DNA from: Hamiltosporidium tvaerminnensis FI-OER-3-3 | Taxonomy: Eukaryota > Fungi > Microsporidia | Direction of reading: 5' to 3' | Length of the DNA stretch: 64,000 nt | Assembly (NCBI GenBank): GCA_022605425.2 | Contig: JAKIMF020000007.1 | Coordinates: 620,001-684,000 of the forward strand | In this document: positions 1 to 37,270 of the stretch, one piece after another | How positions within the stretch are numbered: position 1 is the stretch's first letter | Layout: the number at the start of each line of letters is the position of its first letter | The notes under the pieces: model-generated | The model's database searches: none | What the model was told of the DNA's origin: nothing | Seen by the model: only the letters and a program-made list of their open reading frames with translations | Translations under genes and position numbers: made by a program

Positions 1-510
1 TGTATCACTACTAACTGAGTCATCTTTAATATCTTCAAATTTTCCAGTATTTAATTTATTTTCATTATCAATATTACCATCAAATATATCTCTATTCAAC
101 CCATTTTCTACACCAATATTATTATCAATTTCCCTAATATTCTCTACACAACTATTATTCTCTACAATATTATTATCTCCTACTTCATCATTACCTTCTA
201 CTTCCCTAATATCCTCTACAATATTATTATCTCCTACATCACTCAACAAACTATCAATACTATCTTCAATACTACTATCACCGACACATTTACTCTTATA
301 AAACAACAACTCTATCTCATCATTATCGATACTCAATAACTTATTTTTAATTCGTTTCTGTGTCTCATTAATTCTCAACTCAGTAAAAATACCATTTCTT
401 ATCTTTTCATAATTACACAAACATAAATCAATATCGTATGATTGTAACGGTTTAGTTAATTCTAAATCTACTGAAGAATATATAAAACTTTTTTGTTTTT
501 CTTTTTTCAT
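1..510 (-). CDS. Hypothetical protein, N-terminal 170 codons (runs off the window edge); acidic/Asn-rich
   Basis: Manual translation from the ATG at 510 (MKKEKQKSFIYSSVDLELTKPLQSYDIDLCLCNYEKIRNG...) is open to position 1. A CCC motif lies 9-11 nt upstream (aaccctataaaaatATG). It is absent from the ORF track because the stop lies outside the window. Confidence 0.75.
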   Translation of the reverse strand, partial: MKKEKQKSFIYSSVDLELTKPLQSYDIDLCLCNYEKIRNGIFTELRINETQKRIKNKLLSIDNDEIELLFYKSKCVGDSSIEDSIDSLLSDVGDNNIVEDIREVEGNDEVGDNNIVENNSCVENIREIDNNIGVENGLNRDIFDGNIDNENKLNTGKFEDIKDDSVSSDT

Positions 511-554
511 ATTTTTATAGGGTTGTCATATAAGATTGGTTTACATATTAAAAT

Positions 555-935
555 TTCTCTTTTTTTAAAGAATTATTTCTCATTTTTTAAAGAATTATTT
601 CTTAGTAAAAACGATTCTTTTTTTTTAAGAATTAATTCTCGTTTTTTACACAATTATTTCTATTTTATAAACGATTCTTTTATTTATGAATTATGTCTCA
701 TTTTTTAAAGAATTATTTCTATTTTTTTAAATATTCTCCGCCATTTTTTTAAATATTCCTCCCATTGTTTTTTTAAATATTCCTCCCTGTTTTTGTAAAT
801 ATTCCTCCCTGTTTTTGTAAATATTCCTCCCAGTTTTTATAAATATTCTACCCATTGTTTTTATAAATATTCTACCCATTGTTTTTTTTAAATATTCCTC
901 CCAGTTTTTTTAAATATTCTCACCATTGTTTTTAA
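555..935. repeat. Degenerate short tandem repeats (ttttttaaagaattattt / ttttaaatattcctccc)
   Basis: Repeated 20-25 bp units are visible directly. Confidence 0.8.
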
Positions 936-1113
936 ATAGATTTCGTTTATTAAACACCCCCTATCCTTTATTTTACCTTTTTTTTAAAATCACTCTCATT
1001 TTAATTTCTCCATATTCTTTTATTTCCTCTAAATTTTTAAAATTACCAATTTTCTATTTTTATTTCCTCTAAATTTTTAAAATTACCAATTTTCTATTTT
1101 TATTTCCCCACAA

Positions 1114-1248
1114 ATGAATCTAAAAAATTATTATTTAGAATCCAGAAAGCATTTTTATGAATGTGAAAGTGAAGAAGAAAGTGATAATTTAGAAGATTTA
1201 GAAGAAATAAAAAAATGGAAAGAAAGAAGTGAAAGAAGGAAATTTTAG
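1114..1248 (+). CDS. Candidate 44-aa charged micro-protein
   Basis: Context is ttcccca caaATG; translation MNLKNYYLESRKHFYECESEEESDNLEDLEEIKKWKERSERRKF*. It is divergent from the ORF ending at 510. Confidence 0.5.
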   Translation: MNLKNYYLESRKHFYECESEEESDNLEDLEEIKKWKERSERRKF

Positions 1249-1319
1249 AATTAAAGAGTTTTAGAGTTAGAATGAAGGTGGTATTAAAGAATTATTATTT
1301 GTATGTAGAAAACCAATAG

Positions 1320-2570
1320 CAAATAAATAAAAATAAATTTCTTTAAAAATTCTCTACAAAATAGAAAATAACTTATCTATGATATTTTATTCAATTCATT
1401 TACTTAAAAAAATGCTCTTAAAAAATAAAAAATAACTTATCTAAAAAATATAAATAATAAAAATAAATTTCTTAAAAAAAATGCTCCAAAAAATAAAAAA
1501 TAACTTATCTAAGATATAAAATATAAATAATAAAAATAAAAATAAATTCCTTTAAAAAAATACTTCCAAAAAATAAAAACTACTAATCTAAAAAAGAAAG
1601 AAGTACTTTATTTAAAAGTATCACATCTTTTTTAAAACAGTGGCAAGTGTTATATTTGTTTTCATGACATTAACGCAGTTCTAGGTTTAACATAAATAAC
1701 TGCTACCCCAAAACTCCATCAGTAACCCCTGCGATACCTACGTCCCAAAGCCTTTCATCTACCAGGTGTGTAGAACCTAATTAATAGGCGAGGCAGTTGC
1801 CCGGAGTTCGTTAATGTCCGTTGCATGGAGTGTGATCGAAGGCCGAAGCCCCCCCTGGGCTCCCCCAAGACTATGCAGCATTCCCACTTACTCTACACTT
1901 TCTGAACCCAATAAACTTCTAGCTAAGATATATTTCAGAGGATTACATGGGGTCCACCTAGATAGTGCAATGTCATACCAACAGGTATAACCTGCTACTT
2001 AGCTCTCCCGGCTTTTAATGGTTTTTTGTTTTATATCTCCCAGGCGCTAAGTCTTCTAACCCGAGTGAGCAAGGCTAGGTTTCCATGCTTTTACATGGCG
2101 ATTACCTACATGTTCAGCTGCGGTCTGCAATCTGGTTACATAAAAAACTACAAATAAATTTGTAGAAAAAGTTTCGCCAGTTCTTAGACCTCTTCTCCAC
2201 ATAACAACTCTCATTGAACAACCGAAGATGTAGTGTGGTTTTATTCCCACTAAAAATCCAAACAATAATCTCACACCAGTTTCACACACTCATTGCCAAG
2301 CAGAAAGTTTTTTATGTGGTTATCCTCCCTCCACTACTAATCTAAAAAATATAAATAATAAAAATAAATTTACTTAAATAATTACTTCGAAAAAATACAA
2401 ACTACTAATCTAAAAAATTATAAAATTATAAATAAATTCCTTTAAATAATTACTTCCAAAAAATACAAACTACTAATCTAAAAAATTATAAAATTATAAA
2501 TAAATTTACTTAAATAATTACTTCGAAAAAATAAAAACTACTAATCTAAAAAATTATAAATAAATTCCTT
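1320..2570. repeat. AT-rich ~55-65 bp tandem array interrupted by the 730-bp retroposon
   Basis: Units containing aaaataaaaactactaatctaaaaaa / aaataacttatcta occur on both sides of 1605-2334. Confidence 0.75.
1605..2334 (-). mobile_element. ~730-bp non-autonomous retroposon (SINE-like), full-length copy A
   Basis: Nearly identical to 25871-26598 and, reverse-complemented, to 52009-52734. It begins GTGGAGGGAGG and ends TAAATAAAGT. ctactaatctaaaaa flanks both sides (possible TSD, but inside a tandem array). Confidence 0.85.
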
Positions 2571-2573
2571 TAT

Positions 2574-2885
2574 TTAAAAATCAGCAAACAAATCCAAATC
2601 CATTTCTTCTTCCTTAGGTGCTTCTGCTTCCTCTTTCTTTTCACTTTCATCAGCAACTTTAACAGCAGAAGGTTGTACAGAAACAGAAGAAAAAGAAGAC
2701 ATTTTTTTAGAACCTTCTTCTTTAATAGAATTATAATCTCTACCTTTGATATTGTTAATAAGTAATTGTACTTGTTCTTTATCACACTCTTTACCAGGAA
2801 CTACTGTAAATAGTTTTGATATAGAATCTTCTGTGACAGGTTTACCAGCAACTGAAAGAATGGCATAAGCGGCAATGTACTCCAT
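2574..2885 (-). CDS. RPP2: 60S acidic ribosomal protein P2
   Basis: MEYIAAYAIL N-terminus, acidic hinge and EEEMDLDLF C-terminus. Start context cccatATG; AATAAA overlaps the stop. Confidence 0.93.
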   Translation of the reverse strand: MEYIAAYAILSVAGKPVTEDSISKLFTVVPGKECDKEQVQLLINNIKGRDYNSIKEEGSKKMSSFSSVSVQPSAVKVADESEKKEEAEAPKEEEMDLDLFADF

Positions 2886-2895
2886 ATGGGTTTAA
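2886..2895 (-). promoter_or_regulatory. Microsporidian CCC motif just upstream of the start codon (example; the same motif precedes the ATGs at 510, 1114, 3452, 10947, 27257, 42299, 45715, 60646 and 61399)
   Basis: An AT-rich stretch, then CCC, lies within about 2-20 nt of the ATG in nearly every host gene. This is an established microsporidian transcription-start signature. Confidence 0.75.
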
Positions 2896-3214
2896 ATAAT
2901 ATTTTTTATAAAATAAAAAAGTGAGAATATTTAGAAAAGGGTTTTAGATATGAAGATGGGGAATATAGGAAAATAGAGAAAAAAATATCATGAATTTAAG
3001 ATATAAATTAAATAAAAAAATTAGTGAAGAAAAATATTTTAAAGAAAGGAAATTGAAAGAAAAATTTGGGAGAAAAAAATTCGGAAAAATATTTAAAGAA
3101 AAAGGAATTGAAATAAAAAAATATTTAAAAACTGATTTTAAAGAAACAAAGGTTAACGAAATAAATAAATAAGAAACAAAGTTTAACGAAATAAATAAAA
3201 AAGAAACAAAGGTT

Positions 3215-3309
3215 TAATAAAATTCTGGGTTAAAACATTTTTACCATTTTTATATGTTTTCTTCTACCTCTTTAACCACTATTGTCTCTTCTTCCAAATC
3301 CGACTCTTC
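3215..3309 (-). mobile_element. 5'-truncated 3'-terminal fragment of the R4-like LINE
   Basis: Near-identical to 7077-7171. Flanked by the direct repeat aacaaaggtt (3205-3214, 3310-3319). Confidence 0.9.
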
Positions 3310-3451
3310 AACAAAGGTTAACGAAATAAATAAAAAAAAATTAAAAAAAAATTAAAAAAAATTAAAGAAAAGAAATGAATTTAGGAAAAAAAATAGGAAA
3401 GAAAATACTGATTATACCGTTATTTATTAACCCTTAGATAATTAAAAGATA

Positions 3452-4186
3452 ATGAAAATATATTTTATAAGTTCAGACATAAAAAAATACAAAGAAATTT
3501 GTAAACTTTTTCCGTTTGAAATATTTCATAAGAAAATGGATATTATTGAGATACAAGGTAGTATGGAAGAGATAGTAAGAGATAAAGCTATTAGAGCATA
3601 TAATAGCATATTAGGTAATAAAAGTAGTAAGAATGTGGGGAATAGTAATAGAGATAATGAGGATGGTAATAGAGATACTGAGAATAATAAAGATAAGAAT
3701 ATTAGAGCTAAGGATATAGATATAGGTAATATAAATACTACAACTAGTATAAAAAATGTGGATAATAGAGATGGTGAGGAAGATTTTGCTGTTTTGGTTG
3801 ATGACGTGTCTTTGGAAATGAAAGGACTAAATGATTTTCCTGGTCCGTATGTTAAATACTTCCTTGGTATTGGTCTCGAAAAAATACAAAAAATTGCATT
3901 TTTTTATGGAACCGAGTGTACAGCTATATGTTCACTTGGTTTGGTATATAAATGTGGTGGTAATGTGTGTGTAATTACATCTGAAGGTAGAACAGAAGGA
4001 AACATAATTGTTTCTGATGACTTGGGTACAAATGAATTTGGATTTGATGGAATATTTCAACCCAAGGGGTATCAAAAGTCGTATGGTGAGATGACAGTTG
4101 AGGAAAAGAATGAAATTAGTCATCGAGCTGTTGCTGTTATGCATATGGTTGAAAAAATTAAGGATTTGGGTATTTTTATGAAATAA
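3452..4186 (+). CDS. HAM1: Inosine triphosphate pyrophosphatase (HAM1/ITPA family) with an Asn-rich insertion
   Basis: EIQG, VLVDD, FPGPYVK, FGFDGIF and SHR motifs; CCC motif upstream of the ATG. Confidence 0.92.
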   Translation: MKIYFISSDIKKYKEICKLFPFEIFHKKMDIIEIQGSMEEIVRDKAIRAYNSILGNKSSKNVGNSNRDNEDGNRDTENNKDKNIRAKDIDIGNINTTTSIKNVDNRDGEEDFAVLVDDVSLEMKGLNDFPGPYVKYFLGIGLEKIQKIAFFYGTECTAICSLGLVYKCGGNVCVITSEGRTEGNIIVSDDLGTNEFGFDGIFQPKGYQKSYGEMTVEEKNEISHRAVAVMHMVEKIKDLGIFMK

Positions 4187-4698
4187 AAGATACTTTTCTT
4201 TTCTATAATTTGTTCTCTATTTTTTCTATAGTTTTTATCTCTTCCTCTTAATATAGTTTGTTCTTTATCTTATTCTTTATCTCTTCTTATTTGTTTTTAT
4301 CTTATTCTTTATCTTTTTCTTTGTCTTCTTCGTTATCTTATTCTTTATATCTTCCTTTAATATCTTTCTTTATTTCTTTAATGTTTTAAAATAACTTTTT
4401 TTTAAAATTAGATATATAATTTGATATCTAAATGATTAAATATAGATTTATTGACTACTGTTTTTTATACTTTAAAATGAGATATATAATTTGTTATTTG
4501 ATTATATTAGAAATATAAAGAGAGTGAGGTATAACTAAAGTAAAAAGAGAGACACTAAATAATTATAACATATTATTTTAAAAAATAAAATTTAAATTGG
4601 TAAAAATATATTTTTTGTCTAGAATTTAGAAATCTTAAATTTAATTTATTTAATATTAAGAAATATTGGATTTTAATAAGGATATTTAGATTAAGAAA

Positions 4699-6821
4699 TG
4701 CTACGGGCCAATAAACTCCCCCCCCCATGTCCAATATAACCCCCGTTGTTTTCTAATGATTTATAAAACACATGTTATTTTCATATATTTTACCCAAGAG
4801 CCATATATTTGAAAAAGGAAGTGATTTTTTCCCTAAATTTAATGGGGCGGGCTGTTTAAAAAATGCTTATATAATTTATAACTTGAAATTCCCGTCAAAA
4901 AAAATATTTCAAGTTTTGCCAGAATAAAAATAAAAACTATAATGATAATACTTAAATAATAAAAAAATGCCTATAACAATTGTAAACTAAATAAAATTAA
5001 ATACATTTTATTACGCCGCTAAAAACTGTTCTTGTCTCACCTTTATTGTTTTTTACTTCAATCATGTTGGTCATCGAAGTAGCGGTAACTTAAAAACCGA
5101 ATTATCGTAAAAAGGGTCAAAGAGCGCTCTTTTACTTTTAGTATTCATATCGAAGTTTTTTTTCATCAAAACTTGATCTCAAATAGATAAATCCATGTTT
5201 AGTCTATTTAAATTGTTGCTTCTTATAATTTTTTCTCTATAATTTTTAAAGGGCTTAGCAACATCCGAACCAATCTTACCATCACTTTCGTGATCATAAG
5301 CTATTATAGTGGTTGTTGTGATTACCGTTTCAGTAACTTCTTCATGTAGATCCGAGGCGATTTCCAGGATCCATTGTGTCGCTGCATTTTCTTCTGCTGA
5401 AACTATATCAGGATCTATATCAATAGCAGGCACTATCTTACCGGCTTCGTTTTCAACTATTATGCTTCTAGAAAGTAGATTGTTTAAACCTGGTTGTTCA
5501 AAGAAAAGCATAAATGGTGATTTGTTTGTTGCCTTGTGTATTGTTCTGTTATATGCACAAACAACATTATTAAGATGTTCAATCCACCCTTTTCCACCTG
5601 TTTCATGCAATTTATTCGCTAGCCATCTGTTTAAGGTCTGATTTACAGGTTCCACTTGACCTTGCGCCTTTAGATTGCGTGGTCTTACAAGTATAATTTT
5701 GACGTTAAGATCTGTTAAAAAGGCTTCAAGTAGTGCATTTTTAAACTCTCGACCATTATCAGATTGTATTGCCACCAGGACACCGAAGTTGTCAAATAAA
5801 AATTATAATGAATCTCTTACTAATTCCGAAGTTTTATAAATCAGCTTAAAGCTAGAGATGTTTTGTGTATGTGTCGATTACATTAAGAATCTAGCTACAT
5901 TGATCATTTTGATCGCTGTATCCCTAAAATCTACACAATCCATCATAAAATGATCATATTTTTTGATAATATGATTTATATATATTGGCTGAATTGTTTT
6001 TAGAGAATTTAATCGACTACATGCTTCACAGTCTTTTACATACTCTTTTATGTATGCCTTGAGAATTCCATAGTATTTTTTTATAATCAAAGCAATCCTT
6101 TTATTTACGCAGATATGTGCAACAGAATGCTCTATTTGAGTAATTTGTTGAATCAAGGCAGTTTCAAATCCAAAAAAGGCTCTTATTAGATGATCGCGTC
6201 TTTTAAAACAAATCTCATCTCTGAACAAAGTAAAATATTCTACCTTCTGCCTCAACAACCTCTTTTCTTCTTTGGAATACATAGCTGGATACTGACAGGT
6301 TTTTAAATATGCAGTAAGAATTTTTTTTTCTTGCCTATTTTTACAACTTACAATCTTTGGCATTTTGGTTACATTATATTTTTATATATTTAGAATGAAT
6401 ACTTAGAAAATAAAAAATTATATGAAAGCTTTAAATAAATGTTTGTACAATTTTATGTTGTTTAGTGCCTGTATCGAATTCTACAACGAAATTTCGCCTT
6501 ATAAATACCAACAAATGCAAATAAGTGAAAAAAAGCAAACAAGGAACGGAAAAGCAAAATATAAATTTTATTGGATATTTTATTCATAATTAACACATCC
6601 TATTGTTTATAGAAAAGAAATGTTAAAAAAGGATGGATAAGAAATATTGGAAAGGAAACTAAAATAAGAGGATGTTTAAAATAAGGGGAATAAATGAGTT
6701 ATAAGGATATAGAAATTAAAAGGCTATATCAAAAAATAAAGGGTGTTATCAAGATTAAAAATGTATAGGAAATAACGGTGGTTCTATTGGGCATGGGAGG
6801 GGGGTTTACTGGCCAGTGACA
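4699..6821 (-). mobile_element. Ginger-like (Ginger2/TDD type) integrase DNA transposon, degenerate
   Basis: Imperfect ~50-bp terminal inverted repeats (tgctacgggccaataaactccccc... vs the reverse complement tgtcactggccagtaaaccccc...). The internal ORFs have an HHCC-like region (H...H...CEAC) and an rve core (IQSDNGREF, QGQVE, YNRTIH..SPF). No RT or gag is present. Confidence 0.8.
5179..6363 (-). pseudogene. DDE integrase/transposase, frameshifted (ORFs 5878-6363 and 5179-5775)
   Basis: The zinc-binding and catalytic halves lie in separate ORFs. Confidence 0.8.
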
Positions 6822-7075: not shown

Positions 7076-10000
7076 TTAATAAAATTCTGGGTTAAAACAT
7101 TTTTACCATTTTTATATGTTTTCTTCTACCTCTTTAACCACTATTGTCTCTTCTTCCAAATCCGACGCTTCATTTATGTTATTGGTCGGTTCCTCTAAAG
7201 TGGTTCCTCCTTGTGAAATAAGGGGTGCTTTATTTTTTGGTTTAAAATTTTTTTCACCATCTTCCTCTCTCTTCACTTCTTTTAAAGGAGGTATTGGTTC
7301 CTCATGCACCTCTGATCTCATAATAACACTCATTGACGCTCTCTCCCAGCTCTCTTCGGCATTTAGTCCTGATTCAAGTCCTCTTCGTCGATCAAAGGAA
7401 ATTGTTTCGACTGTTTTCTTAAGTACTATAGACTGAATGTATGCCTCTACATTCATGGGTATTTCTAGTCTTTTAAGATGAGATTTATGGTATTTTGTCA
7501 CAATACCGTCCCAGGTCATCACATAAGGGATTATCTCAACACTACACTTATAAATAAGACCCAACTCATTGGCTAACAGGTCATACTTCCTAAGTTTTTC
7601 AGTTTCAACTATTTGAAGTGAATCTTGGGAAGTGATTCCTACTTCAATGAGTGTTATCTTATTCTTCTTCTTATCTAAAATAAATATGTCCGGTCTGTTA
7701 TTCCGAATTTTAACATCAGTTTTTATTCTGGTGTCCACTCTTATCTCTGCGTACTCATTATCAAGAATTTCTTGAACTGAGTGACTCTTTATTCGTTTGG
7801 AAGACTTAAACTTATATCTATTTAGAAGAAGTAGGTGTAGGCATCTAACCACTTCATTATGCCTTCTAGTGTAATCATGGCCTAGCATTTTTTCACATCT
7901 AGTTGCTAGATGATCTACAGTCTTACCAGACTTCCTACAATGTTGACACACACCATCTGCTCCCCAGAATACATTTCTATCCTGGATATAGCAGAACACA
8001 GCTTCATTTCGTGGCCTAATATTTCCTCTCTTTAGCCATCTTGAAGAGTCACTAACACTCACAAGCTCATTTTTCCTTGCATTATATAACTTTGAATGTA
8101 GTTTTCGTTTTTCTATTTCGTTATATAGTTTTGCAAGTTGAGCTTCTTCTAAACTTTTCTTAGTGACTTCTTCTACCAACCTGTACTTTACTTTTAAGAA
8201 GCCTTTTATTAGTGCAAGATGGGATTTATTATTATTCTCCACCTTGAGGATTGCTGCTCGTCTAGTTGATATTTCTTTACTTTTTTCCAGGCAATCCAAG
8301 AGTTGTAGAAGCATATGTTCGCTTCGCAACTCAACACTATGTAGGCCTCTTCCAAGTTCTGCTCTAGGAAGGTATAAACGCTCTTTACATCCTGGGCGGA
8401 GATGTATCTTATTCTTCACCAACACCGCACGCACTGCATCATCTAACTTAGAGAAGTCAGCCGGTTCAAGTCGAAGTACTCCTATGTGGTAGTTGATTAA
8501 CGATATCGCATGTTGATTGATTGCAGAAAATAATTTTTTTGCGTTTAATCTAGTGTGACAAAGTCTTTCAACTCTTACTATCAGTTGCTTTGTACTTCTT
8601 CAAATGATTTACGTGTTGGAATTCCTCTGCTATCTTCTATTATTCCTAAATATTTGTAAACACTAACACCTTCTAGAACAGTAGCAGTATCTTTACAACA
8701 CGTATCATTTGTGGCTGACTTCTCTTTGTTAATCTCTAAGCCAATCACATCTAAAAATTCCTTTGCCTCGTCTGTCATAGCACTCAATGTGGAGCTGTCT
8801 TTTGCAAGGAGCTTAAGATCATCAATAAACAAGAGATGATTAGTAGAATGGGATTCTGCATCTGTTTGTACGGTCACTTTTGTGTATTTTTCATTAAGCT
8901 TTCGGCTTAGTGGATCCATACACAACACAAATAACAATGGTGACAAACTATCTCCTTGTAGAATCCCTCTATCAATCTTCTGCTCATGATTTTTTCAGGC
9001 CCTACTGATATATCAATTTTCCATTTTGATATAATTACCTTAATAAATTTCAGGATCCAATCAGGTAAACTAAGGTTTTCAATGCATTGAGTTAAATAAG
9101 CATGATCTATTGAATCATAAGCTTTTTTAACATCAATCCATGTTGCCTTAAGATTATTTCCATACTCTTTATTTAAGGCAATATTCAGTAGAGCCTGCTC
9201 TTTCGCTCCCTGCACACCTCTTACCGCCCCTAATTGGTTCTCTGCAAGCAACCCTCGCCTTTCCACTTCAATTTGAACGACTTTCGTTACACACTTTGTC
9301 GTTAACTTATAGAGGTTGGACATACAAGTGATTGGCCTGTAGTCAGAGCCTCTTCGTGGAATTCCTTTCGGTATCAAATACGTAAGCCCGCAGTAAAACC
9401 AATCAGCTTGAGTTGTTACTTCTAAACATATAACTTTCACAATATCATAAATATATTTGTGAAGAGTTGTAAGTTTCTTAATGAAAAAATTGTAAATACC
9501 ATCAATTCCAGCAGCTTTCCAATTGGGAAGCCAATTAATGATATTTACAAATTCATCAAGTGAAGGAAACGTGGTCGGATGATTATCTGATACAAATGGA
9601 ATCAAATAATCATCATACGTGACTGTGTCATCATTTTTGTTCCACATTGTAGACCAAAAACTAACAATTTCATCACGACTAACCACATGCTCGGATTCCA
9701 CACGCTCAGATAACCCACGATAAAATCGACCTCGGAAAAGCTCAAACATACGATTCTCTTTTCGGAATTGCTTCCTACTTTCATGCATCGTAATTTTTTT
9801 CTCGTAAACATTCAAAGACTCATTCTTCTTAACTAAAGCCTCAGAAAGATCAGTTACGCTGCTCAAGTTTAAATTAAACTCTCGCATGATTTTCTTAAGG
9901 CTCTTCGTTTCCGAAGTGGAGAGCATTTCCTGCTTACGAGCCTTCTCGAGAAGATCTTTGGAAAGTACTAACTTAGAAATTTTACTTTCTATGTTTTCCT

Positions 10001-10879
10001 TCCAAGCGGATCTAGGCTTCTCTTTACGTGTTGCCTCGTCATAGCATACCTGCGCAGCTTGTATGATATACGCGGCTTCCGTAATTGACTCAGGTACATG
10101 AGCTCCTGCATATTCACCGACTACTCGATTAATGAGATCCAGAACTTTACTATCAACCAATTCATTTGGATGTTTTCTAGTTCGGACCACCACTTTTCCA
10201 ATTTCGTTCTCCGAGATTTCTTTGATTTTACTCAAGAATTTATCTCTCAGGTTTATGTACTCCGTGGTGTCGGTCAAGGTGCATGTATCAGCGAGACAAG
10301 TGGCGATTCTACGTCGCTCTCCATTCTCTTTTGATTTTACATCCTTTCCCATCTCACTTTGTGCCAATTTTTTTAACACTTCGAGAGTTTCAGTGCAGCC
10401 GAATTTCTCATTATAGTACCTGTGAAGCTCTGTCCAGCCATTTCTTGGCATTCTTTCAAACCTTGTCTGTACTGCAAAAAAAACAATTCGAGGCCATTCC
10501 TTCGGGTCGGCTGTTACGGAATCGAATATCGTCCGCAATGCCATTAGCCGGTTACCTTCCGGAATAGCTAGAGTACAGGGGCTTGTCATGTCGTACGATG
10601 GCTCGCACGCAGAGACTTCAACCGAAGAGGGAACTGGTGCATTAGGCGAAGGTAAGGTGTCAAGCCCACTATTTTGCATTTTACTGCATGTTTGGCTTGG
10701 TGGTGGAGGTGTTATTGTTGTGTAGGAGGAGGAAGGTAGGAAAATCGCCGGTGGGTGTAGCTTACATTTTTGTACCTCACTATCACTCTTCTTCACCTCA
10801 TCAGCGTCGTTTGCAGCCTTTATTTTGGTATTATTCGATATTTCGCTGCTAACATTTTTCTTTCTACCCATTTTTATTC
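7076..10879 (-). mobile_element. Full-length non-LTR retrotransposon with RT and restriction-like endonuclease (R4/Dong-like)
   Basis: 12-bp TSD agaaattattat (7064-7075, 10880-10891). RT motifs: KAAGIDGI, YRPITC, DVKKAYDS, QGDSLSP, FIDD. CCHC finger CQHC..H....C. RLE motifs RHN, PDI, IEV and K..KY. Confidence 0.92.
7112..10871 (-). pseudogene. RT-RLE polyprotein (~1250 aa if joined), two single-base frameshifts near 8978 and 8586
   Basis: ORFs 8907-10871, 8581-8946 and 7112-8434 join into one frame if one A is added at each of two short A runs. Confidence 0.85.
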
Positions 10880-26834: not shown

Positions 26835-27240
26835 TTTAACACCTCTTAATATGTATCTATACAAACAACACCCCTTTAACAAATGACTTATAAATAACAC
26901 CCTCCTATATCACTACTATTATCATTAATAACCTAGTTATACTATTATTATCAACACCCTCCTATATCACTACTATTATTATTAAAACCTTCTAACATAC
27001 TATTATCATTAACACCCTCTAACATACTATTATTATTAACACCCTCTAGCATACTATTATCACTAACACCCTCTAGCATACTATTATTAATAACACCTTC
27101 TAACATACTATTTTATTATTAACACCCTTAATATCACTACTATATTTATTAACACCCTCAAACATACTCTTATTATTATTAACACCCTCTAGCATACTAT
27201 TATCATTAACACCCTAAAACTTACTCTTATTATTCTATAA
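26835..27240. repeat. Array of mostly 27/30-bp aacaccct-core repeats upstream of the GCN1-like gene
   Basis: Units such as aacaccctctagcatactattatcatt are the reverse complement of the intragenic GAGGGTGTT units. Confidence 0.85.
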
Positions 27241-27256
27241 TTTAATACCCCATTAA

Positions 27257-30200
27257 ATGTCAAATATAGATATATCGCTTCTTCTTAAGAAATATAAATA
27301 TTACTCAAAATTATCTAAGACACATCTTAATACTTTGATATCTTCTATTTCTACACAACCAACACATATACAACACACATTGTCATATTTTATCTTAGAA
27401 AATAATACACATAATAACGATTTAAACAGTAAGTATAGAGAATATATAAATCCATGTCATGAGAATGATATAATTCACTGTAATAACACCTCTTGTACTA
27501 ATAGAGATATAATTCATTGTAATAACACCTCTTGTACTGATAGAGATATAATTCATTGTAATAACACCTCTTGTACTGATAGAGATATAATTCATTGTAA
27601 TAACACCTCTTGTACTGATAGAGATATAATTCACTGTAATAACACCTCTTGTACTGATAGAGATATAATTCACTGTAATAACACCTCTTATACTACTGGT
27701 GATATTTTCCAGTGTAATAACACCCCATCATATAACCCTAACCTTAACCTAACCCTAAATAAACGCATAAACATACCAACCAATACCTTATTATTATATA
27801 TATTCAACACAATATCACCTATAAAGATACATAACATAATACATACACATCCCTACTACTTTAAAAACACATGTACGTATGTTTCTAAATACATAGATAT
27901 TAGAAATATATGTCCTTATATTTTAAAATACTCCTCTATTAATTATAAGTGTTATTGTAGGAATATTCTTATAGATTTGTATTTTAAGTTTTCTACAATC
28001 GGTTTACATAATTTTAATCTTGAAAATGAAATACTTTTAGAAATTAAAAATATAATTTATAGTTATATAAAGGGTGTTAGTAACAGTAGGGATATATTAG
28101 AGGGTGTTAGTGATAGTAGGGATATATTAGAGGGTGTTAATAATATGGAGTATGATTATAAGGGTGTTAGTAATAGGGTTAGTAAATTAGAGAGTGTTAG
28201 TAACAGTAGGGATATATTAGAGGGTGTTAATGATAGGTATTGTTATATAAAGGGTGTTAGTAACAGTAGGGATATATTAGAGGGTGTTAGTGATAGTAGG
28301 GATATATTAGAGGGTGTTAATAATATGGAGTATGATTATAAGGGTGTTAGTAATAGGGTTAGTAAATTAGAGAGTGTTAGTAACAGTAGGGATATATTAG
28401 AGGGTGTTAATGATAGGTATTGTTATATAAAGGGTGTTAGTAATAGGGTTAGTAAATTAGAGGGTGTTAGTAATAGGGATAGTAAATTAGAGGGTGTTAG
28501 TAACAGTAGTAACAATCAACAGGGTGTTAATAACAAAGATATACAAGAACCCTTTAACTACAATCTTACTACACAACATCCTCTTAACAACAAAACCCTT
28601 TATTATCATCTTTATACTCTTATTTCTCATAATATAGAAGATAATAACCTTTTTAAATTACTATATAATAACACCTCGATTTATCCACTTATATATTGGC
28701 TTGCTAGTATTGATATGTTATTAACACTAAGTACTAATGAAGAGGTGTTAAATGTAATAAGTAATAAGATTATTAGAAATAAGATAGAAGTATCTAATAT
28801 GGTAAAGGGTGTTAGTGATAGAGAGATGGTAGAGGGTGTTAGTGATAGAGAGATGTTAGAGGGTGTTAGTGATAGTATAGATAATTATAAGGGTATTAGT
28901 GATAGGATAGATAATTATAAGGGTGTTAACATAAGTACTAATAAACAACAGGGTGTTAACATAACTACTAATAGACAGCAGGGTGTTAACATAACTACTA
29001 ATAAACAACAGGGTGTTAATATAAGTACTAATAAACAACAGAGTGTTAACATAAGTACTAATAAACAACAGGGTGTTAATACTAACACCAATACACCTGT
29101 TATCGACTTATATAAGTCTTTTATTTATAATAACCCTTTTACTATAAATAACAGGGGTTTTAAATTACCTATTAATATACTTATATATTCTTCTTTAAGA
29201 ATTTCTACTTATAATGAAAATAACTTACTTTCTTATATTTTTAAAAAGGAAGAATTATATGAAGAGTTTGTAGTGTTGCTTGGTAAATATAGGGGTAGGG
29301 TAATGTATGAAGGTAAAGGGGTGTTAAACAACAGTAATGTAGATAAGGGGGTATTAAATAACAGTAGTATTGATAAAGGGGTGTTAAATACCAGTAGTAT
29401 TGATAAAGGGGTGTTAAATAACAGTGGTTGTGGTTATATTGAAAATAAAGGGGTGTTAGACAACAGTAGTATTGATAAAGGGGTGTTAAACAATTATAAT
29501 AATCATAAGGATTGCATAAACAGAAAAACTATAAATATAGAAAAAAATAAAAAATGCATAAAAATTGAGAAGAACAAAGATTTATTTTACAGATTTAAAC
29601 ACTTCTCTCTACAAAGTATACATTCATTTATAAATGAAAACCTTCTCATATTAGAAGAAGTTGTACCTTTCATACAGCGTATCTCTTCATTTCTACCACC
29701 AGAATTTCCTATTCTCTTCTTTTCCTCTACTTTTAATAATTCTTATAAATTATTTTATAAAGTTTTTAATAAAATGAATGTAATTGATATGAATGACATT
29801 TTATTTGGTAATGAGAATATTAGTCAGTATTTACCTTTTATAAATCTAGATGAAAGTGGTAATAGTTATAGGGGTGTTAATAATAGTGGTATTGATGATA
29901 GAGGTGTTAGTAATACATTCAATAAACAACAGGGTGTTAGTAACAATACTAGTAAACAACAGGGTCTTAGTAATAACAATACGAGCAAACAACAGGGTGT
30001 TAGTAACAATACTAATAAACAACAGGGTCTTAATAACAATACTAGTAAACAACAGGGTGTTAGTAATAACAATAACACCTCTTCTCTACCTAACAATAGC
30101 TTTATTAATATCCCCTTAATCTCTTCTTTGATACATCACCCTTTATTTATACACCTTATGTTAACACACTCTTATTTCAATAAGTATATAAATAACAGTA

Positions 30201-33200
30201 CTTTTATATTAGTATTACCTTTTACGGAAATAAGATACCTTTATTTTACTTATAAATTACCTTTATTAGGTTATTTACAGAATATTAAATGTAAAGAATA
30301 TATGTGTATTATTAAAGGGTGTAATTATAAGTGTAAAGAACATTTGTGTGATAAAATGTATTTTGAACATGACACTGTATGTTATGAAGGATGTAAGTGT
30401 GTATGTAGTTATATGGGTGTTAATGATATGAGTATGTTATGGGGTGTTATTAATAAGGAAATATTAGAGGGTTATAGAGACAAAGATATGTTAAAGGGTA
30501 TAGAGTATGTAACTACCAAATTACAGGGTGTTAATTTAAATTCTCATAAACAAAGGGATGTTAACTATAGTACTAATAAACAAAGGGATGTTAATTTAAA
30601 TACTGATAAACAAAGGGATGTTAACTATAGTACTAATAAACAAAGGGATGTTAATTTAAATACTGATAAACAAAGGGATGTTAACTACAGTACTAATAAA
30701 CAACAGGATTTTAACTACAGTACTAATAAACAACAGGATGTTAACTACAGTACTAATAAACAACGAGGTGTTAACTACAGTACTAATAAACAACAGGATG
30801 TTAACTACAGTACTAATAAACAACAGGATGTTAACTACAGTACTAATAAACAACAGGATGTTAACTACAGTACTAATAAACAACGAGGTGTTAACTACAG
30901 TACCGATAAATATCACCCCTTTAACAACAGAGATAAAGACAACATTATGCTTATAAGGAATATAATACCTCTTATTGATAGTATTAACAATTTACTTAAT
31001 AATAACACCCTTTTATTACACAGTGTTATAGAAAGGTTAGAATGTCTTATTAACAGTCTTAAAAGTAGCACCCCTTTATTTTATTATACAACTAACAGGT
31101 TATTAATAGAACACTTTTTATTACCTTTAATTCTAATACGTGTTATACCACTTATTGTAGATAACAGGTGTTATTCTTACTTACGTTTCTTCTTAGAAAA
31201 TACTTCTTCTTCTTTTATACATTCTATGTGTTATTGTATAGGAATTGAGAATATAGATGTTATGAGTGAATGTATAGTGGTTTTATCATGTGATGTAGAT
31301 AAGGTTTTAAGACATGTTATAGAACATGAAAAGGTATGTGAGTGTCTAAGGGGTGTTAATAATAAGAGTGTGTTAGAGGGTGTTAATAATAAGGGTATAT
31401 TGGAATCTGTTAATGATAAGGATATATTGGTATGTGTTAATGATAAGAGTGTGTTAGAGAGTGTTAATAATAAGGATATATTGGAATCTGTTAATGATAA
31501 GGATATATTAGAGGGTGTTAACAACACTACTAATACACCTAACTTTCTTGACAATAACACACATCCCCTTACAAACACCCCCATAGAAGGTGTTATTCCT
31601 GTAGAAACACTTAAGGAATACCTTGATAGTCCCTTTAGTGATTCTTTTATTTCTTATATATCTAAACATTACCCTTTATCTTCAATACTATTACTAACAC
31701 CCTCTTATTTACACACAGTACTTATACAACACTTAAAGTATTTCCCCAAGAATAACCTAGAAATAATTAAGTATGTTATTAACAATGTAAGTGTTATTAC
31801 TAATAATAATAATTTACTTATAAATTCTTTTTATATACCTTTTAATGAATTAGAAATATTTAAATACCTGTTAAGTATTGGAAATATAGAGTTATTGGAT
31901 ATATTTATAAGACAAAGGGAAATATACTACAGGGATAGAGGTTTAGAGGGAGAGGGTGTGTTAGTGGGAGAGTATGTTAGTAATAGGGATATTGAACAAC
32001 AGGGTCTTAGTAATAGGGATAGTAGTCAACAGGGTCTTAATAATAAGGATAGTGAACAACAGGGTCTTAGTAATAAGGATAGTGAACAACAGGGTCTTAG
32101 TAATAAGGATAGTGAACAACAGGGTCTTAATAATAGGGATATTGAACAACAGGGTCTTAGTAATAGGGATAGTAGTCAACAGGGTCTTAATAATAGGGAT
32201 GGTAAACAACAGGGTCTTAGTAATAGGGATAGCGAACAACAGGGTCTAGGTAATAAGGATAGTGAACAACAGGGTCTTAGTAATAGGGATAGTAGTCAAC
32301 AGGGTCTTAGTAATAAGGATGGTAATCAACAGGGTCTTAGTAATAGGGATGGTAATCAACAGGGTCTTAGTAATAGGGATATTGGTCAACAGGGTCTTAA
32401 TAAAAGTACTATTCAACAACAGGGTCTTAGTAATAGTACTAATACATTACACCCCTCTAACACTACTGATACTATTTATAATTATAAGCTTCTTATACTT
32501 AACACCTTTACTAACCCTACTATAGAAGAAGGTGTTATTCTATATAATATATATAAAAGTATTAACACCACTCCTTCTATTAAAGGTAATCTTATACACC
32601 AAATATGTACAACAAAGTATATAAAGTTAGATATGAGTAATAAGGTGGGTGATAAGGGTAGTAGTGTAGAAGGTAGTAATGAGACTTGTAGTAGAGAGGG
32701 TGTTAATATTAAGGATAGTAAGGATTACAATAAGGATAATAAGGATAGCAATAAGGATAATAAGGATGACAATAAGAATAACATGGATAACATTAAGGAT
32801 AGTAAGAATATTAATAAGAATAACATGGATAACAATAAGGATAATATCTCTACTCTTATATTAACACCCTCTATTTATAATATATATATTATAAGTAAAA
32901 TAAGACCCTCTGATATATCAATATATATAAGTGATATTCTTAATTACTTAGTAAGTAGTTTAGAAGAGACAGATAATAACAGTAACACTTCTATAATTAC
33001 TGGTAGTATTTTAGGTAGTAGTAATAATAGTAACACCCCTTTAGAAAACAGTACTATTAGTAACACCCCATTAGAAAACAGTATTGTTAATAACACCCCT
33101 TCAGACAACAGTACTATTAGTAACACCTCATTAAATAACAGTACTGTTAATAACACCCCTTATAATAATAATACTATGAGTAACACCCCTTTACACACCA

Positions 33201-36200
33201 GTACTCTTAATAACACCCCTTATACTACTAATACTTTTATAAGCTCTATTCTTATGATACACTTCTCTAATGAATTAACACTCTTTACTGTTATAGATAA
33301 AGTACTTTACCTTTTAAAAAATAAGAAAGAAGTAATACGTTATTATATATTAAAGAATATAAATAGTAGTGTTATTCCTATAGAATATATATATAGGTAT
33401 ATTAAAAGGGTTATAATATTACTTAATGATACTTCTTATAGAATAAGTGTTATTAGTAAGGATATATTAAAGGGTGTTAATATAATGACACCTGAGATAA
33501 GAAGTATATGGTATTTGGTAGTTAAGAGTATGTATAGTAGTGGAGGGTTAGGGGGTGTTAGTAGTAATGGAGGATTAGGGGGTGTTAGTAATAAAGGTAG
33601 TAGATTAGAGGGTGTTAACATAAGTAGTAATAAACAACAGGGTGTTAATACCAGTACCTATAAACAACACCCTCTTAACACTACTAGTGACAAACAACAC
33701 CCTCTTAATACTAACAACAACAATATTAACACTCTAATTCATACTCTGTTTAATATAACATATAACCACTACTGGGATTCTGTTTCTGTTACTTGTCTGT
33801 TACATGTGTTATGTACTTATGAAGATAAAAGAGTTTATGATATATTAAAGGGTCTTAAGTATTTATGTGGTTATGATGTATATATTAGTGTAGTAGAGGG
33901 TGTTATTGATATGTTAGTAAGTAGAATAACAAGGATAGGTAAGGAAGAGGTGTTATTATTAGAGAGTATTATAAAGGATTTAAAATGCAATGAAAGTGTG
34001 GTGGGAGGTGTTAGTGATAATAGAAGTATGTTAGAGGGTGTTAATGATAAGAGTATGTTAGAGAAGGGTGTTAATACAAGTATGTTAGAGAGTGTTAATG
34101 ATAATAGTAGTGAGATAAAGGGTGTTAATAATAAGAGTAGTAAAGAAGAGGGTGTTAATAATCTATCTAATATACAAGAGGGTGTTAACATAAGTACTCA
34201 CGAACAACAGGGTGTTAACAAGCCTACTAATGAACAACAGCCTCCTAATAACCTACCTAACAATCTATTTAATGTTAATACTAACAATCTATCTAACAAT
34301 AACACTAACAATCTATCTAACAACAATACAACTAATCTATCTAATGTTAATACTAATACCCCTTTACTTACACTTTCCTATAAATTAACACCCCTGTTAG
34401 ATATACATAATGGTTATAATACTTCTTTACTACTAACACCTATACTTACTATATTATGTAAAAGATGTAAATATAACCTTTTAAATAACATACCACTTAA
34501 CAGTATGTTAATACTATCTTCTAATAGTATAACAATAGAAGAGTGTTATAGTGTTATTATAAGTAATATAAGTGTTCTATATAAGTGGTGTGTTAGCAGT
34601 GATAGGAGGTTAAGAAGTATAGGATGGAAAGGTATAGAGGGTGTTATAGCAAGGGGTAATATGTTAGAGGGTGTTAGTAGAGATATATTGGTGGGTGATA
34701 ATAGTGTTAGTGTTAGATCAGAGGGTGTTAGTAACAGTAGTGTTAGATTAGAGGGTGTTAGTAACAGTAGTGTTATATTAGAGGGTGCTAGTGATAGAAG
34801 TGTTAGATTAAAGGGTGTTAGCAACAGTAGTGTTAGATCAGAGGGTGTTAGTAACAGTAGTGTTAGATCAGAGGGTGTTAGTAACAGTACTAATAAACAA
34901 CAGGGTCTTAATGATAGTACTAATGAACAACAGGGTCTTTGTGATAGTACTAATACCTTACAACCCTTTAATAACAATACTAATACCTTACACCCTGTTA
35001 ATACACCACTATATAATCAACAGGGTGTTATTATATGGTTAGTTGGTGTTACTCTTAGAAGTGATAGTGAAATAAAAAGAGAAGCTATAGAGGTGTTATA
35101 TAGATACATTAGTAGTAATGGGGGTAGTAATAGGGTTATATCTAACAGTAATACCATGTCTGATACTATATCCACTGGTAATACTATATCTAACACTAAT
35201 ACAATATCTAATGTTATTAACACCTCTAACAATACTACCATATCCATTAGTATTAACACCCTCTTTCTCTCTGCTTTGTATGTCTTAAGAAATGATACAC
35301 ACTTACGTGTACGTAAGAGAGTTAACGAGGTGTTATTTACATGTTTAGATAATATAAATACATTTATTAAGAATAACATGTTATATGTCTTTAAGTGTTT
35401 AGAACTGTTAGATTGTAAAGGTGAGTGTGTAGAAGGGTGTGTTAGTGAGGTAGTAGATAAGTATGAGGATATCATATGGGATATAATAAGTAGTAGTGAG
35501 GAGGGAGTATGGGGTTATAGAGATAAGGATAGTAAGGATATGTTAGAGGGTGTTAATTGTACTACTAGTAAATATAAGGGTGTTAATTGTACTACTAGTA
35601 AATATAAGGGTGTTAACATAAATACTATTAAACAACAGGGTGTTACCAACCTTACTAAAGAACAACAGGGTGTTAACATAAATACTATTAAACAACACCC
35701 TCTTAATGCTCATTTGTCTTGTGACTTACTTATTATGATTATAGGGGTGTTATTAAAGAGAAATAGAAAGGTATATGAAATAACAGGGTATTGTTTAAAG
35801 AGTACGAATATTACTCTTATTAAAGGGTTATATAATATAAAGGAGTGTAAAGAAAGGGTGTTAGAGATAATATATAAGATATACAGTGAGATGGTGGGAA
35901 GTGATAGTATAGAGGGTAGTACTGATAGTAGTGATAGTTATAAGGGTGTTAGTATAGAGGGTAGTGATAAGGGTGTTAGTGATAGTAGTGATAATTATAA
36001 GGGTGTTAGTAATACTATAGATGATTATAAGGGTGTTAGTATAGAGGGTAGTCATCAGGGTTTTATTAACAGTACTGATAATTATAAGGGTGTTAGTAAC
36101 AGTAATATGGAACTAACACCCTTTAATTACTACTACTAATGAACAACCCCCTTTAATCACTACTACTAATGAACAACACCCCTTTAACAATAATAACTAC

Positions 36201-36675
36201 TATTATTTATTTGTTAAGGATATATTGTGTTATAAGGGTGTTAGTAAAGAGTTATATAATAAGTATAACAATAAAGGGTTATTAAAGTATATAGAGAATG
36301 ATAGTAACAAGGGTACTAGTAATGAGGGTGTTATCTCAGTGTCTAGTAATGAGGGTGTTAAAGATACTAGTAATGAGGGTGTTAAAAATACTAGTAATGA
36401 GGGTGTTCACTGATACTAGTAATGAGGGTGTTAAAGATACTAGTAATGAGGGTGTCACTGATACTAGTAATGAGGGTGTTATCTTACAGTCTAGTAACAC
36501 CCCTTTATCATTTACTTTAGAACATATACAATGTCTTATGTATAAGGTGTTAGAACAAGGTAATAGAGAAGAGTGTTTAGATACTTTAGAGATATATTGT
36601 AATAATAATACTAATAACACCCTGTTAAATACAATTATTAAGGAGTGTAAAAGAATATACAGGGAGGGTATTTAA
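27257..36675 (+). CDS. GCN1: GCN1-like HEAT-repeat translational activator inflated by many low-complexity insertions; frameshifts near 36115 and 36408
   Basis: Segments resemble GCN1 in the correct order: IILLNDTSYRI...IMTPEIRSI (cf. EVLTDSHVKV...IRNPEILAI), TYNHYWDSVSV (cf. KFVHFIDAPSL), LSALYVLRNDTHLRVRK (cf. LAGLYMGRSDTQLVVRQ). Start context ataccccattaaATG. The frame is open for 2960 codons, and downstream frames continue to the stop at 36675. Confidence 0.7.
27462..27710 (+). repeat. Coding 39-bp tandem repeat (DIIHCNNTSCTDR)
   Basis: About six copies are visible in DNA and protein. Confidence 0.95.
28081..28440 (+). repeat. Exact 180-bp higher-order duplication made of six 30-bp units
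   Basis: 28081-28260 is repeated at 28261-28440. Confidence 0.95.
30540..30900 (+). repeat. Coding 30-bp tandem repeat (STNKQQDVNY)
   Basis: tactaataaacaacaggatgttaactacag, about 12 copies. Confidence 0.95.
31980..32430 (+). repeat. Coding 30-bp tandem repeat (NRDSEQQGLS)
   Basis: taatagggatagtgaacaacagggtcttag, about 15 copies. Confidence 0.95.
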
Positions 36676-37270
36676 TTAAAGGGTTATTGATAGTAGTATT
36701 ATAGAGGTGTTAGTAACAAGGTGTTATAGTATATATTATATGGTTAGTAATTAAAGGGTTATTAATAGTAGTATTATAGAGGTGTTAGTAACAGGGTGTT
36801 ATAGTATATATTATATGGTTAGTAATTAAAGGGTTATTAATAGTAGTATTATAGAGGTGTTAGTAACAAGGTTATAGTATATATTATATGGTTAGTAATT
36901 AAAGGGTTATTAATAGTAGTATTATAGAGGTGTTAGTAACAAGGGTATACAAGTAGTAATAGTAGTATTATAGAGGTGTTAGTAACAAGGGTTATAGTAT
37001 ATATTATATGGTTAGTAATTAAAGGGTTATTGATAGTAGTATTATAGAGGTGTTAGTAACAAGGTGTTATAGTATATATTATATGGTTAGTAATTAAAGG
37101 GTTATTAATAGTAGTATTATAGAGGTGTTAGTAACAAGGTTATACAAGTAGTAATAGTAGTAATTAAAGGGTTATTAACAAGGTGTTATAGTACATACAA
37201 GGAGGATATCTAATTAAAGGGTTGGTATTAGAGTAACAAGGTTATAGTATATATTATATGGTTAGTGTTA
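36673..37270. repeat. ~75-bp tandem repeat with agaggtgttagtaacaagg core
   Basis: Unit starts at 36673, 36748 and onward. Confidence 0.9.

Follow-up and report, generated by a model that had tools for sequence, protein, structure and literature searches.

What are the low-complexity blocks that interrupt one very long open reading frame (ORF) of the microsporidian Hamiltosporidium tvaerminnensis, and why do they all run from G-rich to C-rich? The question is raised by a 64,000-nucleotide stretch of FI-OER-3-3 (GenBank assembly GCA_022605425.2, contig JAKIMF020000007.1, positions 620,001 to 684,000), which is referred to here as the window and whose coordinates are used below unless another sequence is named. 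The host ORF lies on the forward strand at 27257..36139, and runs for 2960 codons without a stop through DNA with a G+C content of 27%. By our own delimitation, it contains 16 repeat modules (M0 to M14 and M12b), which occupy 4762 of the 8880 nucleotides (54% of the frame), thereby more than doubling its length, and are separated by non-repetitive, helix-looking stretches of 24-135 residues. We give roughly six chances in ten to the explanation that a compound minisatellite family, specific to Hamiltosporidium and built like a foldback element, has left copies inside genes and that these copies are the blocks.

The presence of low-complexity blocks made of 27, 30 or 33-bp units, as described in the original prediction, was confirmed by Tandem Repeats Finder, which reported these periods and multiples of them at every place named. 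The units share the core GGGTGTTA, which is read as GGT-GTT (Gly-Val). The pattern GGGT[GC]TTA occurs 88 times in the host ORF, nearly always in the GGT-GTT frame, whereas the roughly 50 kb of the window outside it contain almost none. The unit types are sorted along the modules, with mean relative positions of 0.32-0.34 for A/GAGGGTG (read as ..KGV.. or ..EGV..), 0.52-0.64 for CAGGGT[GC] (..QQGV/L..) and 0.82-0.90 for CACCCT[CG] (..QHPLN..). None of the window modules has a Q unit ahead of an E/K unit, and a G-type unit comes behind an H-type unit just once, in the form of the QQGV that closes M12 (position 35023). By our own arithmetic, the probability of a random order within the window modules is approximately 4e-11. 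The succession predicted for the blocks was thus found in the window as E/K, then Q, then QHPLN, except that the E and K units are intermixed. The predicted G-to-C gradient was also recovered, as the GC skew drops from the first to the last third in 16 of 16 modules, including those that lack a canonical core.

The QHPLN-type core is the reverse complement of the G-type core. Judging from the sequence, the units of the C arm are G-arm cores in inverted form: QHPLN corresponds to the E/K type, QHPVN to the Q type and NTPL to the GGGG variant. The core had been proposed to form a self-complementary dyad at the level of strong and weak bases (S/W); of the 32 heptamers that such a scheme would allow, only 6 are present, and the symmetry reduces to GGGTG and its reverse complement.

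The family extends far beyond the window, into hundreds of genes. In the complete assembly (21,638,905 bases, 17 contigs), we counted 796+655 = 1451 pairs of cores located 15-24 nucleotides apart, as compared to none in a reversed control. The unit types of the window come back at hundreds of loci, spread over all contigs, which agrees with the earlier argument that independent slippage alone is insufficient. Sampling of 13 loci along contig 1, with two G cores as the sole criterion, retrieved the same blocks inside long open frames, and Pfam identified a DEAD-box helicase, two PI4K paralogues, IleRS and PRP8 among these frames. Modules from 22 proteins, namely M12 and modules from 21 other proteins picked by their similarity to it, align unit by unit to one architecture. 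In the literature searched, we found no description of a GGGTGTTA repeat family.

Comparisons with other proteins suggest that the family is confined to the genus. A 1200-residue segment of the host protein, searched against 1.84 billion representative proteins, gave 99 matches; the best was a fragment of the same gene, and the others were mostly obtained through the modules. Eight of the ten matches looked up belong to H. tvaerminnensis or H. magnivora, and the Hamiltosporidium proteins among them include Sec7, dynein heavy chain, an AAA ATPase, USP7, phospholipase and IKI3. A second, word-indexed sequence search agreed with these results. IleRS measures 1570 residues here, against roughly 1000-1130 residues in species-named microsporidian IleRS and 1194 residues in a Dictyocoela entry. 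The excess consists of five inserts in variable loops, one of which is a typical ILEG..QQGV..(YHPLN)n module. The family is common to H. tvaerminnensis and H. magnivora and missing from all other microsporidian IleRS compared.

Two of the sampled genes showed additional features. The IleRS locus (L011, 3067-4227 and 6190-6405) also contains inserts without the GGGTGTTA core, of the types KSEDLN, KEIN..NTNT and ELNK..NNKPNTT. At least two of these core-less inserts go from purine-rich sequence to Asn/Thr/Pro codons, and the G-to-C trend may therefore be wider than the GGGTGTTA family. PRP8 (contig 1, 860469-865561; L004, 470-5562) is split into two overlapping frames, 470-3157 and 3142-5562, with modules in both; the split reflects either a frameshift or an assembly indel inside a repeat.

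The non-coding copies account for the polarity. They consist of long arrays of G units, a short centre and then arrays of inverted units, so that a G arm is followed by a C arm in long inverted repeats of tandem subrepeats (loci L023/L034, L035, L036 and L037). The arms measure 0.3-1.3 kb, the skew changes from about +0.9 to about -0.9, and complementarity between units of opposite arms reaches 90-96%. In the coding copies, the C arm is short. Since an inverted repeat reads G-then-C on either strand, the constant polarity requires no directional process. Of the options listed in the original prediction, a dispersed, hairpin-capable coding insertion element is the best fit, with the non-coding copies as true foldback arrays. 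The periods are 28-42 nucleotides in non-coding arrays, multiples of three inside ORFs and 24 to 42 nucleotides overall; the non-coding values led us to reject a strict phasing of about three helical turns.

Across the genome, the G-to-C order is a bias and not a fixed rule. In a strand-neutral sample, read along the plus strand and ignoring genes, 18 of 24 mixed blocks were G-first, with 381 versus 67 ordered pairs. Close junctions genome-wide numbered 58 G-to-C versus 19 C-to-G, and the unit order was E/K-to-Q in 141 cases versus 77 and Q-to-H in 41 versus 22. One locus (G000:C12:244763-245630) displays a strict K/Q alternation in a 60-bp higher-order repeat and is the main source of the Q-to-K "wrong order".

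We propose that dispersal of an element built in this manner would have given rise to the modules. The G arm is a tandem array of 27-33-bp units with the core GGGTGTTA, and the C arm an array of inverted units with TAACACCC or CAACACCC, the variants being sorted by position along the arms. Such an element reads G-rich first and C-rich last on both strands, giving the same polarity whichever way the gene runs. In genes, only frame-preserving copies would survive, with the G unit in the GGT-GTT frame that yields ..EGV.., ..KGV.. and ..QQGV... The number of units would drift afterwards via slippage or unequal exchange.

The length changes observed are at the level of units. Between the two PI4K paralogues, which share 98.7% identity, the only length differences are two indels of whole units, one of 60 and one of 57 nucleotides. 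These copies are in inverted orientation about 100 kb apart on contig 1 (at approximately 1.17 Mb and 1.27 Mb) and stem from an inverted duplication of the segment that is recent. When phospholipase orthologues of both species and of several isolates were compared, the modules occupied the same sites but differed by 10- or 20-residue units. The comparison of isolates proposed for the host gene gave a similar picture: a fragment of it from a different H. tvaerminnensis assembly shows no differences outside the modules, while M7, M8 and M9 differ. No gain or loss of a whole module was seen among the two species, isolates and paralogues compared. Because the module sites are common to both species, the family is older than the species split.

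The use of the reading frame was examined in the G units of the host gene. Among the six frames, only the used one is both free of stops and hydrophilic (mean hydropathy -1.1); two of the unused frames always contain stops, and the other three have stops in 27-45% of the units and are otherwise hydrophobic (about +1.3 to +1.4). The availability of a single stop-free hydrophilic frame would explain why one frame dominates, why the cores are mostly in sense and why the C arm is short, with special open variants (QHPLN, NTPL). The sense strand of the host gene carries 88 G cores versus 17 C cores. In the contig 1 sample, 285 of 511 cores are in sense, in the GGT-GTT frame and in open stretches of at least 150 codons. 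Cores are 5-6 times commoner in sense than in antisense, and antisense and out-of-frame cores also exist. In M3, an additional G shifts the register by one base to GGG-GTG, yet K-G-V is kept; what is conserved is thus the DNA core.

The modules are contained in the GenBank coding sequences. In the Iso-Seq annotation of H. tvaerminnensis (PMC10542269), introns are few, with only 98 predicted and 17 confirmed, and they average 28 bp. Together with the frame left open over 2960 codons, which had already been taken to favour translation, the single usable frame, the triplet periods found only within ORFs, the annotated coding sequences and the few short introns argue for translation. Thus, we infer from the sequence features that translation of the modules most likely provides variable loops of the host proteins with hydrophilic inserts, which may be rich in beta structure.

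Four other explanations were weighed against a foldback-like minisatellite family. It has been suggested that the blocks are removed from the RNA as long introns or exitrons; removal of this kind, or skipping by the ribosome, would be guided by fold-back between the G end and the C end. M10 indeed folds far better than its shuffled versions (z = -4.35), and ab initio gene finders formerly predicted 890-5708 introns of 195-310 bp in Hamiltosporidium. These "introns" may, however, be the modules themselves, and the folding is not general: M12 reached z = -2.40, whereas M13 (-0.83) folds no better than chance and a module-free control scored +0.17, for which reason a general hairpin or fold-back of the RNA was rejected. 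Moreover, the blocks reside within stop-free codons of which one frame is used, the coding sequences include them, their frames are kept open, and the introns annotated with Iso-Seq are few and have a mean length of 28 bp. Inspection by eye of the 3' end of M10 revealed no AG behind the branch-like ACTAAC. We therefore consider RNA removal highly improbable. It is improbable as well that the phased core serves above all to bind a protein at the level of the DNA, be it a transposase or a chromatin or centromere protein, or to position nucleosomes, with the coding copies as by-products. Such a signal would fit the invariant 8-nucleotide core with its variable spacers and the 30-bp period of many arrays, but with periods from 24 to 42 nucleotides the helical phase is not kept, and no putative binding protein is known.

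A third explanation is that the modules represent a true protein domain, such as a beta-solenoid resembling those of decapeptide or pentapeptide repeats, with distinct units for the N-terminal cap, the body and the C-terminal cap. The order would then be kept by selection on the protein, and the symmetry of the DNA would be secondary. Among PDB sequences, M7 matched the decapeptide repeats of Legionella DotG (E = 1.6e-9) and also designed pentapeptide solenoids, and the Pfam family Decapeptide gave a weak match (15 bits versus a cut-off of 45). AlphaFold, when provided with the 22-module alignment, predicted regular strands of 6-8 residues with a 10-residue period, and the positions and order of the modules are conserved between the two species. 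The confidence of the models was low, however, with a predicted local distance difference test (pLDDT) score of 47 for M5 as a single sequence and 55 for the 22-module alignment, and the solenoid-like fold is a lead only. The same core is also present in long non-coding foldback arrays with non-triplet periods, occurs in antisense and out of frame, persists in a different frame in the GGGG variant of M3, and belongs to units whose number varies freely among isolates. We judge the domain hypothesis unlikely. Little weight can be given to the fourth explanation, according to which each block arose locally by slippage and converged via mutation bias, with no common origin. It is consistent with the unit-level indels being the only length changes seen and with the other insert types (KSEDLN, NTNT, ELNK), which also go from purine-rich to C-containing sequence. 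It is contradicted by the recurrence of whole 30-nucleotide unit types (E, K, Q and H, with their spacers) at hundreds of loci on all contigs and by the unit-by-unit alignment of modules from 22 proteins; the lists of units also suggest that they group by type across loci and not by locus. An origin by telomere healing was also considered, as end-to-end fusion would likewise give a G-then-C order; several indels are needed to match GGGTGTTA to the telomere repeat TTAGGG of H. tvaerminnensis (PMC10542269).

Several observations weigh against a minisatellite family of foldback design. The module sites are common to both species and to the paralogues, and no mobility was seen. We detected neither target-site duplications nor conserved termini, and no transposase came to light, although no search aimed at one was made. 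The typical IleRS insert, whose borders are set by the orthologues, has neither a target-site duplication nor a terminal motif, and elsewhere the array borders are too degenerate for a target-site duplication to be called. The polarity is a bias of only 2-3:1, with exceptions such as the alternating K/Q higher-order arrays. Many G-to-C junctions are complementary at the core only, and arm complementarity was clearly above that of shuffled sequences in only 4-6 of 20 junctions. The asymmetry between G and C cores in the host gene (88 versus 17) would have to be ascribed to selection. The case for translation is an indirect one, as the poly(A) RNA runs X10 and X13 contained no parasite reads (zero on 33200-36300). 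A bolder version, which we offer tentatively and regard as doubtful, is that the GGGTGTTA modules belong to a current or recent foldback-type mobile element that can settle in frame within essential genes thanks to the one open, hydrophilic frame of its arm. It would then be to eukaryotes what the palindromic elements are to Rickettsia. In a lineage otherwise noted for shrunken proteins, such an element would have enlarged the proteome again, and a new kind of decapeptide beta-solenoid may be the fold of its peptide.

The individual modules, all on the forward strand, vary around this common design. M0 (27467..27730) is not of the GV type; it contains 6.6 copies of a 39-bp unit, which gives a 13-residue repeat, and its skew falls along the module. 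M1 (28058..28600) has 13 intermixed E/K units and one Q unit, followed by QEPFN and QHPLN, and M2 (28800..29100) starts with the units K, E, E, K and K, continues with five Q units and ends in NTNTP. M3 (29305..29500) consists of KGVLNN units with the GGGGTG core variant, in which G-V is still encoded one base out of register, and lacks a C arm. Two RGV units precede five Q units (QQGV/QQGL) in M4 (29850..30095). M5 (30405..30935) begins with MGV, WGV, EGY, KGI and LQGV, continues with 12 KQ(R/Q)DV units and ends in YHPFN. M6 (31345..31600) has 27-bp RGV/EGV/ESV units followed by NTPNF, THPLT and NTPI. The DotG-like module M7 (31960..32475) is made of fifteen QQGL units, ends in LHPSN and differs by one unit in another isolate. 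M8 (32690..32850) contains purine-rich KDNKD repeats and varies in length among isolates. M9 (33010..33225) has C-type units only (TAACACCCC, read as N-T-P), which corresponds to the inverted core orientation read in the sense strand.

The cleanest module is M10 (33530..33725), with the units GGV, GGV, LEGV, QQGV, QHPLN and QHPLN; it forms nested 10-bp stems in the RNA fold and was spanned without gaps by one 859-nucleotide contig in each of two DNA runs. M11 (34000..34400) has a G arm (GGV...QQGV) followed by a C arm (QQPPN and 24-bp CTAACAAT units), and DNA run X4 has a 3-nucleotide AAC insertion after position 34333. M12 (34630..35030) is composed of eight E/K units, two QQGL units, LQPFN and LHPVN. 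M12b (35105..35265) contains S/N/T-rich repeats with a falling skew. The region 35086-35260 is represented in run X4 by an additional contig of roughly half the depth (190 versus about 380) with 11 differences over 175 nucleotides, which suggests the presence of two haplotypes in this sample. M13 (35520..35715) reads LEGV, YKGV, YKGV, QQGV, QQGV, QHPLN, and M14 (35920..36190) has YKGV/DKGV units followed by C-type units, with the annotated stop inside.

This stop is probably not the end of the gene. The contigs of DNA runs X1 and X4 lack, at full depth, one base that is present in the reference at 36114..36115 on the forward strand. Removal of this base restores a canonical ..EQHPL.. unit and opens the frame beyond the annotated stop, and the stop at 36137-36139 therefore probably reflects an indel in the assembly, or else variation between strains, within a repeat unit. 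A continuation of the gene through further modules (36140..36675, forward strand) is probable, and the coordinates of the original prediction imply the same; it requires the base correction and a second frame change where there is no read coverage. G-type arrays with periods of 24, 49, 75 and 195 bp continue downstream on the same strand (36236..37200), with no long frame beyond about 36675; they include a 75/195-bp satellite of degenerate G-type units (AGAGGTGTTA, ACAGGGTGTTA) at 36673-37197, outside any long frame. Directly upstream of the start codon, at 26866..27240 on the reverse strand, is a non-coding inverted array of E-type units, with spacings that are not all multiples of three and an ORF of only 51 residues. 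The gene is thus flanked by a C array on its upstream side and a G array on its downstream side, an arrangement that the foldback design would account for as well.

The host gene had been described as GCN1-like, with HEAT-like sequence between the blocks. These terms are labels and not observations. Pfam identified no family at E<=1 for the whole protein and none at E<=10 for ten module-free segments; a PDB sequence search returned nothing outside M7, and an ESM Atlas search yielded unrelated leads only, below 0.9. The proteins identified by the two sequence searches were all from Hamiltosporidium, and all but one had been matched through the modules. GCN1 identity is thus unsupported by Pfam, PDB, ESM Atlas or the orthologue searches. 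The sole relative outside the modules is a hypothetical protein from H. tvaerminnensis itself, a fragment of this gene. On the basis of these sequence comparisons, we regard the protein as a helix-rich orphan outside the genus Hamiltosporidium.

No Rfam families were found in the window. A 654-residue ORF on the reverse strand at 8907-10871 has a reverse-transcriptase domain (RVT_1, E = 2e-9) and is probably a retroelement. Further genes in the window encode Ham1, ASF1 with a long tail, a C4 zinc-finger ribonucleoprotein, hexokinase and the RuvB-like TIP49. A TLC-family nucleotide transporter is encoded in one open frame in the assembly.

Microsporidia are the textbook example of shrinkage of both proteins and genomes. 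A genus-specific repeat family that makes up 54% of one ORF, adds about 500 residues to IleRS and is present in PRP8, PI4K and dynein goes the opposite way. The genes of H. tvaerminnensis are unusually long, with a mean of 1,391 bp for which PMC12449221 gives no reason, and the family may help to explain both this length and the 200-300-bp "introns" of the ab initio predictions. For annotation, it matters that assembly indels in modules create false stops, as at 36114/36115. More generally, the family offers a tractable system for studying how selfish repeats enter coding sequences without killing the gene.

How does the family compare with known systems? Like coding minisatellites, the modules are in-frame tandem arrays of triplet-length units that are absent from orthologues and polymorphic in unit number. 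The compound minisatellites and megasatellites of Candida glabrata (PMC2566889) are similarly coding tandem repeats with more than one unit type in several genes; they are limited to cell-wall and adhesin genes and are not known to invade conserved enzymes or to have a design of G arm and C arm. The DotG/IcmE decapeptide repeats and the pentapeptide solenoids share the 10-residue period and the pattern G-[LF]-S-x-[KR]-[DE], but the likeness to DotG stems from the periodicity, and structure prediction gave no fold of good confidence for the Hamiltosporidium modules. The low-complexity inserts of Plasmodium falciparum, another AT-rich parasite, are reportedly hydrophilic repeats between conserved blocks of housekeeping proteins that change rapidly in unit number and are missing from orthologues. 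Unlike the Hamiltosporidium modules, they are mostly simple Asn-rich runs and are not known to have a shared 8-nucleotide core, shared unit types across genes or the polarity of an inverted repeat.

The closest architecture is that of the foldback transposons. In FB elements, the unit type shifts along the arm, and the length of the arm varies between copies. FB and Tetris of Drosophila (PMC4079207) have long inverted arms in which subrepeats of about 10-31 bp are arranged in tandem, and such elements have been linked to satellite arrays. The Hamiltosporidium family differs in that no target-site duplication, transposase (for which no aimed search was made) or insertion polymorphism was detected, and since neither these hallmarks nor mobility were found, we do not file it as a foldback transposon. 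To our knowledge, residence in frame in hundreds of copies within conserved genes is not a habit of FB elements, yet it is seen in Hamiltosporidium. For this property, the nearest parallel is provided by the Rickettsia palindromic elements, which are said to be dispersed palindromic DNA that has entered numerous unrelated housekeeping genes in frame and is translated there as additional peptide, at sites where the fold tolerates it. A shared core, shared unit types and inverted-repeat polarity set the Hamiltosporidium family apart from both these elements and the Plasmodium inserts. The Rickettsia elements are bacterial, measure 100-150 bp and occur singly, with no tandem arrays inside them, whereas the modules described here are eukaryotic, tandem, variable in length and up to 0.5 kb long; what the two have in common is that they are found in frame within many unrelated conserved genes.

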